NCBI GenBank assembly: GCA_026770705.1
Contig: JANJGN010000052.1
Coordinates: forward strand, 682,001-746,000
Direction of reading: 5' to 3'
Length of the DNA: 64,000 nucleotides
DNA from: Isurus oxyrinchus
Lineage: Eukaryota
Positions 1,074 through 64,000 of the stretch are shown in pieces. The notes beneath the pieces were generated by a model. That model ran no database searches. It was not told the DNA's origin and saw nothing but the letters and a program-made list of their open reading frames with translations. The translations under genes and the position numbers were made by a program. Numbering within the stretch: the first letter of the stretch is position 1; each line of letters opens with the position of its first letter.

Positions 1074-1093
1074 AACTTCCTCATTTTGACTCA
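1074..1093 (+). promoter_or_regulatory. Putative promoter of gene A: PU.1/Spi-type ETS site plus AP-1 site
   Basis: AACTTCCTCATTTT (AAAATGAGGAAGTT on minus) overlapping TGACTCA at 1087-1093, just upstream of the conserved first exon. Confidence 0.55.
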
Positions 1094-1099
1094 CAGAGA

Positions 1100-1214
1100 C
1101 ACATCAACCCTTTCTAATTAAACACACAGAGGGAGCAGCACAGGAAGAGGTCATTCAGCCCAAACAGAGCGTGTGGGCAGTTCCTCCCCAGGCGAGCAGT
1201 CGGACAGGTCCTGG
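1100..1214 (+). other. Putative non-coding exon 1 of gene A (start approximate)
   Basis: Strong donor GG|GTAAGT at 1214/1215; block nearly identical in 5 copies, four of which are followed ~400 bp later by a leader exon. Confidence 0.6.
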
Positions 1215-1647
1215 GTAAGTAACGGAACGATTGGAATTCACTTCCACCACCAACACCGTCCTTTGTTGATGTTGTGACTTTATAAAGACAGATTCCAATG
1301 ATTGATGCCTTTGAAAGATTTCTACTGATTATTGAGATCTGGGTGTGAGACTCAAGTCTGTTGTACAGAACATCTTTCTAGCTCAAGGTACATGAGCTTG
1401 GGGACATCCTGAGGTGGTGAAAGGTGCTATAGAAATGCAAGTCCTTCATTGTTTTTCTTTCTGAAAGCCTTGTAATTCTCTGCAGAGCACCAATCATCCC
1501 ACAGAGAATCAAATTTGTCTGTGAAGATATTCTCTAAAAGCAGTTCTGATCTCTCGAGAGCATTCAGACAAGAGGTGAAGTCTCATTAACTCCTTTCTCT
1601 TTCAGAACTTCACAGCTAGAAGCTGAGGAAATATCTGGGAGTGGACA

Positions 1648-58916: not shown

Positions 58917-61900
58917 ATGATCGGGAAATCCTACTTCCTCCTGTCTCTTCTCCAAGGTAATAACATCGTCAGCTCGGACAGGTTTATGGCTAATAGTCTT
59001 TGTAAAAGATCATTTTTATTGAGCTGTGATTGGGAACCGATTCAGCAGTGAGCCAGTGTACAAACTCACACCAAGTCCCATTCACCCATCACCCCTGTGC
59101 TCAGTGATATACACTGACTCCCTGTCTGACAGCAGAATTGGAGGAGAGCAGAGATCTCAGAGGGTTTTAGGGTTGGAGGAGGTTACAGGGATCGGGAGTG
59201 TAGAGGGGGGATGGTGGGGTAAGAAATCGATTATGAGAATTTGAAAATTGAGTCATTGCTGGACTGGGAGCCAGTGTAGTTCAGCCAGTGACAGGGGAGC
59301 GATCGGCTGAATAGAGAATCAGGGATAAAAACTGGGGAATGAGGTCGATCCCGATGTTAGGACTCGGATAACAATGGCCTGAAATTAGTGTCTTTTGCTG
59401 ATTTTGTCAGAATTTCCCATGAAGACAGCACAGCAGCTCCTAGAATAGACAGGCTGTTCAGTGTCACACTTCCTGTCCATTCTCACCTTGCTAGATACTT
59501 CAATAAGGGAGCAAGATAACTGAAAGAGAGAAGGAAGGCAAAGCTGTCTGTGTGTAAAACTGTCAAATATTCTGAGTTATCATGATTGTTTCTGATCTGC
59601 TGCAGAGTTTAAAGTTCTCAGAACATTAGCACTTTGCAGCTCAGAGAGAGACCATTGACTCACTGCCTGAAAGGGCGGTGGAAGCAGATTCAACAGGAAC
59701 TTTCAGAAGGGGAACTGGATAAATACTTGAAGGGGACATTTTGCAGGGCTGTGGAGAAGAGAGCAGAGGTTAGAGTGGGACTAATTGGACAGATCTTTCA
59801 AAGGCCCAGCACAGGCTCGATGGGCCAAATGGCATCCTTCTGTTCCGGATCATTCTACAATCTGATAAATTAAGCCCCACATCAGTAACTCTTCAGGCTC
59901 CTGCTGCAGGGATGGATCTTTGAGAAGGACAGGGAACAAGAGGTTCCTGGTATCATTTTCATATTTCTTGACAATTATATAAGTGTATAGATCTGTTGAA
60001 TATTTGAGTCTCTAAAGCGTAGAGGTAATCTGCTGTTATATCGAGATCTTGTGGTGGCAAAATTGTCTGGAGGTTTCTTTAATTGCTCACATTGATCTGT
60101 GGGATTGTCATTCTTCGATGTTGTCCCTGGTTTCAATTGACATTACACCCTTGATGCAACTGAGGAGGCTTTAAACTAATATGGCAGGGGATGGGATCCC
60201 GAGAGGAGGTTCAACAGAGAGAGATGCACGGCCAAAATTAGAAGAGAGAGCAAATGAAACTGGAAGGCATAGAAATTATTGACCATTTAAGGCTCAAGAT
60301 AGTGTGGCAAAGTTGGATTGTATTAATTTTAATGCAAGGAGTCTGACAGACTTGCATTCTCCTGCAGGTGTAATGTTGCAGCTCCCTTGAACCTGCCAAT
60401 ATTGTTGAATCTGTCTGCATATTTCAATGTTATGTCATGAACTGAGCTGATGGGATAGTTTCTGAGACTGGGACAGACATAAATCCATTGGCTTTCGGCC
60501 GGACTGGACAATCATGGAAGTGGGTGGGGCCAGAAAATCCCACCCCTATGGGAACATTTTCAGTTAATTTGATGTGCCCAGAGAGATCAATAAAGACCAC
60601 AATCCACAATTTATTGACAAGCCACGTCAGGATATGTGTGAGAGGTGGAATATCGATCACCGCTCCTAGTCTCGTCGTGTACATCATCGCCATTTCCTGG
60701 TTTGTCAGTCACCACATGTATATGTTCCTGATGGGATAGCGGATGGTCATTCTTATTGCTTGAAGGTTCCCCGTTGTGCAGGGTTTGTTTGGATCAGCGC
60801 ACGGCTCTTTGTAGCTGCATCAGCCTTTGCTCTAGTGCCCTGCCGCTGTCAATGGCCCTTTCTGCCACAAGCCTTGATGGATTGGTGGAAAGCTGGGCAT
60901 TTCCTTGGTGTCCGCAGAAGGCCACACCTTCCACACGACTCACTAGGTTTGGATGTTCTAGTGAGTGTGCCAACAATTGATGTTGTACTGAGGACCTATA
61001 AGCTTCGTTGACCTGCGAGGATCACTTCGTATTTATGTCCATCCTAGAGTAACTCTTCAATGCTATAGGTTTTGGTCTTATCTAGCAGATCTTTCTGGAA
61101 GGCTTCCATGGGAGTGGATGCGATCACCAACTCAACAACTGTGTCTGCAGGCTCTGTGTTTGAAATCACAGTGCGTACCCTTTTCTCTACATCGGCTGAT
61201 GAAGTGGTCTATGGATTGTGTAGGCTGATGAAATGACATAAACTCTAGTTGATGAATATGGAGTTTCACCTGATTCTGAACCTGTCTTCCAATGTCGTCC
61301 ATATCTATTGGGGATCCTTTCGCTCTTCTGCTGTTAATCCTGACGTGTTCAGCCTGTGTAGACCTTCATTCCCAATCGCGAGGTGAATTTTTATGGGTGG
61401 TTCGTCTGGTTCAGTCACACCTGAATCAGGAAACCAGAGCTCTGTACGCTGTTTAAACATTCTGAATTCAGATAGTCGGTCAGCTACATCCCAGTTCAAA
61501 CTGGGGAATTTCGTGGACATTCTGACAATATTCCTTTGACGTTCCTTCTTCTACAGGACCCGGGATGAGTGTCGCTTTAGCCCCTTTTGTGCGCTTTTCT
61601 GAAGCTCCGCCCACGGAGACGGGTTGTGGCAGGAACACACCACGGAGTAATGGAGTCTTTGTTTTTTATTCAATTTGCTGTTCATCAATCTCAAAGCCGC
61701 CCGTTATAATCACTAACTTCTCTGGGCTGATTTTTATAATGGTTTTTGTGTGTTTGAATCTCCCTCGCTCACTATCGATCCAGCCCACACCCTGGTCACT
61801 CGCCTTCCCTGACTGAGCTAACCCGCTGCTGGTCCTGGCAATACACACTGTCCCACTCACTGACCTACAGGCCGTGTGCTGTAATCTCACCACGAGGGAT

Positions 61901-63726
61901 CCGTCTGCTCCCCAGCTCTTTACTTGAGCTCTTTCCCATCACTGTGTCTTCAAAGGTTTCCTGAGCAGTCAGTACACTGCGATTTCAACCCTCTCTGATG
62001 CTGTGTCTCTGTTGTGGTCTGACCAAAGCGTCGAGGGTCGTCTCATGTCATGTAGCTCGATCTCAGGCTGTTCACCATGTCATACCTGTACTGAATCTTG
62101 CTGCCAGAATGTTTGGCCACCGCTGATCACCATGTTGTGTTTTTATAATGATATAAAGGCACCAGCCACTGATACGGAATTGGGTAAATACATTGTGGGT
62201 TGAGTTATTTAGAACAGGGACATGAGAACAGATATACAAGGATAGAAAGCTGGGAGACACCTGCGGCCAAACTGTGTGAGCTGTGTTCTGCTCACAGGCC
62301 AAAGTGAAACTTGGACTGGATGGTGTTATCATCCCAGCTGATGTTACTACTGGGCAAGTCAGATCCCAGGGTGGAACTCAGCTTGATAGGTCCTAACTTT
62401 TATTTTTTATTTAGGAATGTGGAGTGCGGCTACTGAACAGAGTCACAGGAGTCATCTGATGATCTTCTAACAAAAGAATAAAACATTTATTAAACTAGGA
62501 AAGACAAACTATATTACATTACACCTTCACCCAGATCTATACCTTTGCAGATTCATAAGTAGAACACAAGTTACAATAACTATCTTATATTCTCATGTTC
62601 ACACTAAGTGCACAGTCGATATAAACCAATAGACGACCTGTGGTCAGGGACACCACATTCTGAAAGAAACTGACAGAACCCACTTGAAACAAATGCCAAG
62701 TCTCCCTCCTCATCTGACCCCAGACGCTTGTTACACTGTGAGACAACCAGTCTCACTGACTCTCCAAGAACTCGCTTTGGAATCTTCTCCAACATGACAC
62801 ATTCACTCAGACACCTTCCACAAGGGTCCACTTTCACTATTTCAAACTCTCCTTCCCATGTTCCTGCCCCCTGGATCGCCACGTGCATTCAGCCTTCCTT
62901 CCACGCCCTGTCTCTCCAATGCTCAGCCGTGTCAATGGAACACCATGGCTTCACATGGCCGTAGTAATGAGTCACCAACCTGTGGTGTCTCCTAGGATCT
63001 TCTGGCTTCTCACAAGCCTATTTTGATTTAGGCAAAACAAAATCAGCAAGTTAACCCAATGCCCCGGACAGTGGAATTCCAAATGCATTGTCCCCAACTT
63101 CAGTTCTGTTGGAGAGCAGGCTTGTGCACAAACAGGGTCCTGAGGACCATGAACCAATGTAGAATGAACTTTTCCGCTTTTGTGTCCAGGATTCTCTTCC
63201 ATCTGGTGTGATACCTTGTGGAGTTCATTGTGTGTCCTGTAGATGGTCCACACTGCAGCCACTGTGCCCGAGTGATGGAGGGGGTGGATAATGAGTCTTG
63301 TGGATCAACAAAACATCCAGAGTTAAATATTGATATTTCTCTCCCCAGTTGGATTGTCACAAGAGTGGAAAGGTGACACTCCACGAGAGGTGACAGCGCA
63401 GAAAGGTTCGTGTGTACAGATTCCATGTCATTACAGTTATCCATCAGATTTGGTAAAGAAACCACATGTCGGAATCTGGAAAATGAGAAGCTACATACGG
63501 AACAAATGGTCTAAATGGTCTACAGCCTTTCACTCCAAGGATCACAGTCACGAGTTACCACGGTTCCGCCATCGGACCCGGCTGTCTGGAGACCTGAAAG
63601 ATGGCGACTGTTCCCTGATTATAAACAACATCAGACGGGAAGATGCAGGACCTTATTTTTTCACGATAAAATTTGGCAATCGTCCGAGCCATAACTATTA
63701 CCCTGTAACCCAGCTTCAGGTTTCTG
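58917..63726 (+). CDS. Gene E (5' part): join(58917-58956,63349-63726); leader plus Arg-less V1, continues past the window
   Basis: MIGKSYFLLSLLQ plus VGLSQEW..GPYFFTIKF (ACG 63663-63665); introns collinear with gene D. Confidence 0.87.
59960..61900 (-). mobile_element. Degenerate Gypsy element, paralog of 40100-42940, retaining a gag-like N-terminus
   Basis: MSTKFPSLNWDVADRLSEFRMFKQRTELWF (61305-61520); shared blocks with 41680-41800 and 42330-42940. Confidence 0.7.
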
Positions 63727-64000
63727 GTAAGTGCTGTGTTATAATTACTCAACAATTCACATCCAACACTCAATGGGAAATAATAGTGTTTGATTTGCTT
63801 GTTTTTTGGCCATGTTAACCAGCGTCACTATTTTTAATGATTTGTCTATTTCTGCTCCCAGATCCATGAGCTTATTGTGTGTGATTGAATCCACATCATA
63901 GCTGTAATGTAAACCGAGCTGAGGGGTGATGACACCTCCCCCCTGAGTGAAGTGTCTCCTCCCCACTACACCTTCCACCCCTTACACTGTCTGTGTAAAC

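Follow-up and report, generated by a model that had tools for sequence, protein, structure and literature searches.

How many genes, and receptors of what kind, are encoded by a stretch of DNA along which leader, immunoglobulin (Ig), transmembrane (TM) and upstream exons all recur on one strand? The question is raised by 64,000 nucleotides (nt) of Isurus oxyrinchus DNA (NCBI GenBank assembly GCA_026770705.1, contig JANJGN010000052.1, positions 682,001 to 746,000 of the forward strand; hereafter the window, in whose own coordinates all positions are given). A sequence-only reading of the window had proposed five genes (A to E), with a separate promoter and exon 1 for every one of them, that form inhibitory and activating pairs of Siglecs under gene conversion after an independent radiation in this lineage. 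The cluster elements described there are real and far beyond chance. We consider it likely that they belong to a large tandem elasmobranch cluster of Siglec-like type I receptor genes in which phase-1 exon cassettes are joined to three membrane/tail modules. We conclude that the window contains three leader-bearing genes, namely A, D and the start of E, together with an orphan 3′ module, B, and not five genes.

Gene content of the window

For the exon map, homologous shark and ray protein models were aligned back to the window with tblastn, splice sites and phases were then inspected, and exons were searched singly. All of the elements counted in the sequence-only reading were located: five copies of an "exon-1" cassette (donor ends 1214, 32303, 36424, 38608 and 58466), four intact leader exons (ATG at 1648, 36868, 39059 and 58917), four V exons (5262-5627, 45324-45692, 49695-50060 and 63349-63726) and three TM exons (16415-16511, 31266-31362 and 55229-55368). 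The map also holds exons that had gone unmentioned: two exons for the second Ig domain (D2; 6487-6783 and 50789-51085), eight intact I-set exons of 282 nt (seven consecutive ones in 7764-14509 and one at 53243-53524), one degraded I-set exon (29746-30021) and three exon relics. All receptor exons lie on the + strand, and the extracellular ones are bounded by ag|..|gt, have lengths divisible by 3 and are of phase 1-1, the arrangement that had been claimed. Three tail types on shared ectodomain modules could likewise be read: a tail with an immunoreceptor tyrosine-based inhibitory motif (ITIM) and an immunoreceptor tyrosine-based switch motif (ITSM) in gene A, a YxN tail in module B and a short tyrosine-free tail in gene D. 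The genes appear to be assembled from interchangeable phase-1 cassettes (a leader, a Siglec-type V, a C2-set D2 and a repeatable I-set "stalk" exon), with each set of ectodomain cassettes probably joined to one of the three membrane/tail modules.

Siglec identity and relatives of the V domains

All four V exons scored above the Pfam cut-offs for both V-set (E 1e-10 to 1e-13) and Ig_CD22 (E 1e-7 to 1e-11), D2 passed C2-set_2 and matched domain 2 of MAG and CD33, and the stalk exons passed Ig_3/I-set. Among solved structures, the best matches of V, which span the whole domain, were Siglec-5 (1.7e-15), CD33, MAG, Siglec-8 and sialoadhesin, at E 1e-13 to 1e-15, with Siglec-10 and Siglec-7 also recovered, whereas the matches to Siglec-15 (2e-8) and CD22 (1e-5) were much weaker. 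The alignment to Siglec-5 places GPYFFRIE against GSYFFRVE and the cysteines of GSCVQIPC...DCSLII against those of GLCVLVPC...NCSLSI, so that the three-cysteine pattern is present, with a presumed intrasheet pair and a third cysteine presumed to bond to domain 2. The YFFR arginine and the three hallmark cysteines are kept in two of the V exons; at the F-strand arginine position, V 5262 and V 49695 have Arg (AGA), and V 45324 and V 63349 have Thr (ACG). At the sequence level, then, the Siglec build (V-set, C2-set D2 and cysteine pattern) is in place, in agreement with the Siglec-type V domains originally proposed, and the encoded receptors are putative sialic-acid lectins.

A HMMER search with the V exon (5264-5626) against 1.8 billion representatives returned 1527 relatives, headed by NCBI predictions from, among others, Scyliorhinus, Mustelus, Cetorhinus, Stegostoma, Chiloscyllium and Hypanus that bear the name "sialic acid-binding Ig-like lectin 8/10/12/13/14". 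Of the 99 and 42 proteins recovered by two word-based searches, every one came from a shark, ray or skate, which bears out the chondrichthyan setting that had been suspected from the letters. Great white shark (TM 97%, V 93%) and basking shark supplied the proteins closest to the window exons, which makes a lamniform source probable. The E-values of V to Siglec-5/CD33, MAG and sialoadhesin fall within two orders of magnitude of each other, and in a V tree built without curated references the window V domains group in a clade of 45 domains from which all seven proteins labelled teleost or mammalian are absent. With dozens of paralogues per elasmobranch genome and V domains in this separate clade, the window genes are not simple orthologues of one conserved Siglec, as had been argued. 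The proposed radiation is not private to this species, since the three TM/tail modules and a build with several V domains were found in more than one shark order; 24 of the 122 close-homologue models retrieved carry 2-4 V motifs. We conclude that this is a real, elasmobranch-wide receptor family. It is already visible as automatic NCBI models in many sharks and rays, and a literature search on Siglec in sharks, elasmobranchs and cartilaginous fish found no published study of it.

A distinct if lesser possibility is that these Ig-superfamily receptors descend from Siglecs but have given up sialic-acid binding, in which case the Thr-bearing distal V domains would recognise other ligands. In two V exons the F strand carries both Arg to Thr and Glu to Lys replacements, and the loops of the binding face are far more diverged than the framework. 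Against loss of lectin function in the family at large, the V domains of gene A and of the second V exon of gene D keep the full motif, and Arg is present in 300 of the 369 V domains of the retrieved proteins. On the other side, a residue other than Arg or Lys at this position is found in very few of the close elasmobranch V domains. We retain putative sialic-acid lectins as the preferred description.

Gene A

Gene A (1067-19147) begins with a cassette copy, c1, at 1067-1214, a putative 5′ non-coding exon recognised from the five-copy alignment and from RNA contigs, with an internal acceptor at 1129/1130 and a donor after 1214. The copy alignment also defines the leader exon at 1606-1687 (ATG 1648, MIGKSYFLLSLLQ, phase-1 donor). 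It is followed by the V-set exon with the YFFR arginine at 5262-5627 (V-set 1.3e-13, Ig_CD22 1.2e-11) and by the C2-set D2 exon at 6487-6783 (C2-set_2 3.3e-8). RNA contigs of four runs were aligned on window positions 1000-6999; they contain the leader-V joint 1687->5262, in three runs from three studies, and the V-D2 joint 5627->6487, in one run. Behind D2, a relic of the 5′ part of an I-set exon (7002-7091; tblastn with the models P0006 and P0011) precedes an array of seven intact I-set exons at 7764-8045, 8729-9010, 9757-10038, 10814-11095, 11902-12183, 13161-13442 and 14228-14509. The first of the two assembly gaps (14517-14983, an N run) starts 7 nt past the donor of the seventh of these exons, and the sequence that follows it is 93% like the intron behind the fifth unit. 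Because the gap thus lies inside an intron of the tandem array, the reading frame is unaffected and seven is a minimum for the number of I-set exons.

The membrane and tail part of the gene consists of a TM exon at 16415-16511 (RDSSKWTVGLFTAGIMLSVFLAGIFIFICVRK, phase-2 donor), which is 97% identical to great white shark proteins, a first cytoplasmic exon at 17207-17288 that contains TNYIAL, and a last exon at 18899-19147 with the ITIM ILYANI, the ITSM TEYTQI and the stop codon. Splice sites and homologues support the cytoplasmic exon, and motifs and homologues the last one. This tail is kept in 56 elasmobranch matches, and its combination of an ITIM with a distal ITSM is the pattern of the CD33-related Siglecs, from which gene A may naturally be taken for an inhibitory-type receptor. 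Its predicted product would have one Arg-bearing V domain, D2, at least seven I-set domains and a TM segment, and the ITIM and ITSM would recruit SH2 phosphatases.

Some further features of gene A deserve mention. The 3′ end of an eighth I-set exon survives as a relic at 15526-15597 (found by tblastn, with its donor kept and a weak in-frame acceptor) and could serve as a 72-nt mini-exon between the stalk array and the TM exon. Each intron of the stalk array (8050-14500) opens with a (CA)n-rich tract that reads as His-Thr open reading frames (ORFs); such tracts may favour unequal exchange, and they make the array hard to assemble. The intron between leader and V contains two inverted-repeat pairs (~2560-2800 with 3520-3760, and 3880-4010 with 4270-4400) that resemble foldback elements or miniature inverted-repeat transposable elements.

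Module B

The YxN tail belongs to module B (29746-34077). An I-set exon at 29746-30021 comes first; its splice-site reading gave a poor donor (gttctc), its G strand is degraded and it is two codons shorter. The TM exon (TM_B, 31266-31362, RDSNEWKAGLLGAGICLSVGLSGFFIFKCVRK) is 94-97% identical to basking shark models, and three cytoplasmic exons follow: a cassette copy, c5, read as a coding exon at 32219-32303 (cassette 32156-32468) in frame with the TM_B donor, a second tail exon at 32815-32919 encoding DEYRGPVYENCE, and a last exon at 33961-34077, identified from homologues, which encodes DLYANCEFAEDSVYGNL and the stop. The resulting tail contains VYENCE, LYANCEF and SVYGNL-stop, that is, YxN motifs of the Grb2 type, the last of which also fits an ITIM, and the last two tyrosines have a spacing like that of an immunoreceptor tyrosine-based activation motif. 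The B-type tail is kept from Heptranchias to Mustelus (19 matches) and is coding in basking shark, Mustelus, Heptranchias and other models. A search of a protein atlas with it gave a chance-level match only (0.75). Relaxed tblastn and blastn searches of the 10.6 kb upstream (19148-29745) for a leader, V or D2 returned chance matches only. The second assembly gap (23835-24082) lies in this interval, in sequence rich in transposable elements (TEs) between gene A and module B, and no receptor exon is nearby. Module B is the orphan 3′ half of a third receptor type, most likely a gene remnant.

Module B could instead be an alternative 3′ end of gene A, reached by splicing the stalk array to TM_B past TM_A and the ITIM tail, so that one ectodomain would have two signalling ends. 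The missing 5′ half would then be explained, TM_B and the three tail exons are undamaged and in a phase that would allow splicing from the stalk exons, and RNA of a related organism contains a junction from the cassette to the second tail exon. Alternative and read-through tails are also present in basking shark and great white models. Yet such a splice would have to cross 10 kb of TE-rich DNA and the polyadenylation signals past the gene A stop, the Ig exon adjoining TM_B is degraded, and in basking shark the B-type tail sits in a gene with its own leader, V and D2. We regard this alternative as unlikely and continue to treat module B as a gene remnant.

Two tandem arrays are found in this part of the window, a 24-nt minisatellite of 34 copies (33049-33862) between the last two module B exons and a 43-nt array of 18 copies (35415-36178) downstream of the module.

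A cassette exon with two roles

The cassette is a sharply bounded block of 314 nt whose five copies are 95-98% identical, with the next 325 nt at 87-90%. The sequence-only reading had labelled all five copies promoter/exon 1. One of them, c5, follows TM_B in frame via the internal acceptor and encodes KGSSTGRGHSAQAERVGSSSPGEQSDRSW, and the same exon is coding directly after the TM segment in models from Cetorhinus, Mustelus, Scyliorhinus, Heterodontus, Pristiophorus, Heptranchias, Hemiscyllium and Chiloscyllium (six shark orders). The other four copies lie ~430 nt upstream of leader exons.

Joints to leaders were seen in RNA. In two runs the cassette donor at 1214 is joined to leader-exon sequence, and the inserted AGTTTGAGAGTGAGAAGTGAATGG translates as SLRVRSEW; the great white model P0188 starts with MGNSSPGEHSDRSW|SLRVRSEW..MIRKSYF, which corresponds to cassette plus leader and matches the RNA insert exactly at SLRVRSEW. 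A backward joint, 1687->1130, connects a leader to the internal acceptor of a cassette and fits the tandem layout in which the leader L2 is followed by the cassette c3. In addition, the end of one RNA contig at the cassette donor reads AAGAGAGGCGAGG, which is the start of the tail exon at 32815 with one mismatch. Given the coding copy after TM_B and the RNA joints to leaders, we conclude that the cassette is one exon in two roles, coding in the B-type tail and serving as a 5′ exon before leaders. The same cassette layout is present in another species, since the basking shark isoforms P0180 and P0183 read through from TM_B to the cassette, the next cassette, the next leader and the next V, out of frame. 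A cytoplasmic coding exon of module B would have been copied in front of four leader exons. The promoter label has to be dropped for the copy at 32219-32303, which is a coding cytoplasmic exon; for the other four any promoter role is putative, the evidence being splice joints of such a cassette to leaders.

At position 1164, all RNA contigs placed on c1 have G where the window copy c1 has A, and the other four window copies have G; this mismatch suggests that the reads derive from a different copy, individual or species. We also considered whether the supposed promoter copies were TE fragments, on account of a stretch resembling a long interspersed nuclear element (LINE) tail at 2336-2450, and rejected this candidate: the cassette is an exon with RNA-supported junctions, and the TE piece lies further downstream in the intron.

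Genes D and E

Gene D (36276-55368) opens with two successive units found by copy alignment. The upstream unit (36276-36907) has cassette c2 (donor after 36424) and leader L2 (36835-36907, ATG 36868), and the second (38460-39098) has cassette c3 (donor after 38608) and leader L3 (39019-39098, ATG 39059). The first V exon (V1, 45324-45692), assigned by Pfam, reads YFFTIKF, with Thr in place of Arg. The second (V2, 49695-50060; Pfam and splice sites) keeps Arg, starts with AEPSQEW and has an extra Cys in YPLCL. Behind them are a D2 exon at 50789-51085, 98.3% identical to that of gene A (tblastn and splice sites), a relic of the 3′ part of an I-set exon (51410-51559, tblastn), an I-set exon at 53243-53524 (Pfam and splice sites) and a terminal exon at 55229-55368 that encodes the TM segment GEILHVILILGIQAVIFLVAVVITIAGVCVW, a 13-residue tail and the stop.

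Two V exons here do not mean two genes. V 49695 has no leader of its own upstream, and its AEPSQEW start occurs in internal V domains only (10 shark models). V 45324 and V 63349 open with VGLSQEW, as first domains do, and group together with V1 of lamniform double-V proteins. The great white models P0257 and P0258 have the order V1-V2-D2-TM, passing over an equivalent of the I-set exon 53243-53524, with the same terminal cassette as gene D. From the internal-type start, the missing leader and the order in P0257/P0258, we conclude that c3/L3, V 45324, V 49695, D2, the I-set exon and TM 55229 form one gene. The extra Cys of YPLCL in V2 (49790-49800) is also found in internal V domains of Mustelus, Scyliorhinus and Cetorhinus models and may pair with a free cysteine of V1.

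The five-gene arrangement of the sequence-only reading is thus very unlikely to be right. Its raw material exists, including the five cassettes, four leaders, four V and three TM exons, the three tail types, and D2 exons of A and D that are 98.3% identical. However, one of its five promoter copies is the coding exon behind TM_B, one of its V exons lacks a leader and has an internal-V start, the orthologous models read V1-V2-D2-TM, and c2/L2 is followed directly by c3/L3 across a V-free interval. All of the modules are, moreover, common to several shark orders. The YxN tail belongs to the orphan module B and not to V 45324. The window is better described by genes A, D and E and module B.

The tail of gene D is WERQTVKGSRQTV-stop and contains no Tyr. 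In the TM cassette, all six homologues examined (P0006, P0020, P0143, P0156, P0257 and P0258, from Scyliorhinus, Chiloscyllium and Carcharodon) have Arg, within LILGIR or IQILGIR, where the window has Gln; the Gln codon CAA is one CpG transition from CGA. A protein search with this TM region of P0006, narrowed by word and length limits, yielded two proteins. The basic TM residue of a short-tail partner is therefore absent from gene D. Similarly, V1 of gene D has the Thr codon ACG where its great white counterpart has Arg. On its sequence, gene D looks like an activating-type build minus both canonical residues (TM Arg and V1 Arg) in this assembly, so the activating partner that had been seen in the short-tail gene is not a canonical one here. 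Its product would probably not couple to a charged adaptor, and any sialic-acid binding would be through V2 only.

Gene E has cassette c4 (donor after 58466) and leader L4 (58875-58956, ATG 58917) within 58318-58956, again defined by copy alignment, and a V1 exon at 63349-63726 (Pfam and splice sites) with Arg replaced by Thr; the gene runs past the window end. Because the 5′ parts of D and E are 90-98% alike over several kb, gene E is taken to be a recent duplicate of the 5′ part of gene D.

Probable exon-limited homogenisation

Divergence within the cluster is distributed as a mosaic. The D2 exons of A and D differ at 5 of 294 nt, with a synonymous divergence (pS) of 0.013, and the flanking introns have diverged by ~10%; at the intron rate ~8 synonymous changes would be expected, and 1 was seen. 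The stalk exons are 94-98% (about 96%) identical, with pS ~0.065, and their introns are ~84% identical (~15% divergence). The V loops behave in the opposite manner: between the Arg type and the Thr type, loop pS is 0.46-0.58 and nonsynonymous divergence (pN) is 0.27-0.33, compared with a framework pS of 0.09-0.14 and intron flanks that differ by 2-5%. The V of gene A and V2 of gene D are 92% alike, with a pS of 0.19 and no sign of homogenisation. This pattern fits exon-scale gene conversion around old, maintained loop types. Of the proposal that the pairs are kept alike by gene conversion, the part concerning D2, the stalk and the cassette fits the low exon divergence relative to introns or flanks, and the part concerning V finds no support. 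Exon-limited homogenisation would keep D2, the stalk exons and the cassette alike and would leave the V binding loops old and divergent. Positive selection on the V loops was considered and found unsupported, with pN/pS at ~0.55-0.6 and pS itself high in the loops.

An origin of the repeats in misassembly, whether by tandem placement of haplotypes or by a wrong join in the array, is highly improbable: despite the two gaps and the difficulty of assembling a tandem array of 1-kb units, the copies diverge by 6-16% in introns, far above haplotype divergence, with different TEs and microsatellites, and models of other sharks likewise carry the same exon in several copies, up to 8 in one protein.

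Several points count against the reading of the cluster given here. The RNA contigs are ~2-3% diverged from the window and come from other organisms and near-identical paralogues, and because of this divergence the junctions are evidence of splicing at the level of the family and not proof that these exact copies are expressed. They cover the 5′ part of gene A (1000-6999), not genes D and E or module B, and they support splice joints, not transcription starts or promoters. Sialic-acid binding, phosphatase recruitment and adaptor pairing are read from motifs. The TM Gln and the V1 Thr of gene D could be variants of the individual or errors. The first gap may hide further stalk exons, and the second, if far larger than estimated, could conceal the 5′ half of module B. 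Finally, the pS estimates are based on 20-80 synonymous sites.

Comparison with known receptor systems

The nearest models are NCBI predictions from sharks and rays, named "sialic acid-binding Ig-like lectin 5/8/10/12/13", "CD33-like" or "MAG-like", which belong to the same family and have the same cassettes and the three TM/tail modules. Great white P0166, P0188, P0257 and P0258 and basking shark P0178-P0183 are 77-97% identical to the window exons, with the lowest values for the Thr-type V1. Unlike these models, which have Arg at both sites, the window has the V1 Thr and the TM Gln, and it also differs in its longer stalk array and its orphan module B.

Mammalian CD33-related Siglecs (Siglec-5, -7, -9 and CD33) share with the shark family a V-set domain with the GxYFFR arginine and the three-cysteine pattern, followed by a C2-set domain, all on phase-1 exons. 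They also share a membrane-proximal ITIM (ILYANI) and a distal TEYxxI, as in the gene A tail, and a tandem multigene cluster with fast-changing V loops. However, V identity is only 30-40%, and the shark V is equally similar to MAG and sialoadhesin, so that the V domain does not decide orthology to the CD33-related Siglecs. The shark family further differs in its at least 7 repeats of one I-set exon, its common multi-V genes and its third, YxN, tail, and among the word-sharing matches it is confined to elasmobranchs.

The pairs SIGLEC5/14 and SIGLEC11/16 resemble the shark cluster in that ectodomain modules are common to the inhibitory and the short-tail forms of a single cluster, and the 98% likeness of D2 between A and D, set against introns that have diverged by 10%, would be expected of gene conversion. 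In contrast to these pairs, V likeness between A and D reaches only 92% (pS 0.19), the short-tail TM residue is Gln in the window and not basic, and in other sharks it is Arg rather than Lys. Human Siglec-XII (SIGLEC12) is like gene D in having two tandem V-sets in one receptor with the distal V arginine lost. Siglec-XII has an ITIM tail, whereas gene D has a short tyrosine-free one, and in sharks the double- or multi-V build is widespread (24 of 122 models) and no oddity.

According to Bornhofft 2018, as cited in a passage of PMC9630641, only Siglec-1, -2, -4 and -15 are ancient, and the CD33-related Siglecs vary between species. A 2014 survey of the shark data then available reported no FcR gamma chain, FcRL, classical Fc receptor or KIR/LILR-type gene (PMC4016189). 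If our reading is true, sharks would own a candidate system of inhibitory and activating receptors whose ends are of the ITIM/ITSM, YxN and TM-arginine types, and the use of a sialic-acid-lectin scaffold for paired receptors would have originated, or been retained, at the base of jawed vertebrates. We suggest, as a speculation that we ourselves find rather doubtful, that elasmobranchs have their own KIR/LILR-like paired system on a Siglec scaffold, built from shuffled and exon-homogenised cassettes with a dual-role exon, in which old distal-V loops are maintained and some Arg-less V domains serve non-sialic ligands such as pathogen or self markers. The value of the locus is comparative, in that it offers clean cases of exon-limited homogenisation, of Ig stalks of variable length and of a cytoplasmic coding exon copied before the leaders of its neighbours.

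Repeats and mobile-element relics

The 64-kb window has a GC content of 45%, a CpG observed/expected ratio of 0.30 and two N gaps, with microsatellites, minisatellites and LINE relics in abundance. One minisatellite family, with a unit of 33 nt, recurs in either orientation through introns and intergenic DNA (17498-18712, 25451-25668, 29233-29627, 38034-38238, 52769-53110 and 56810-58104) and gives rise to long artefactual ORFs, for example one of 514 aa at 17195-18739. Frameshifted relics of LINE reverse transcriptase lie at 20352-20774, 27360-28883, 45913-46347 and 55826-56140 (-); two of them match Pfam RVT_1 at E ~1e-6, close to the cut-off on either side, and the others have a LINE C-terminal pattern with no Pfam match.

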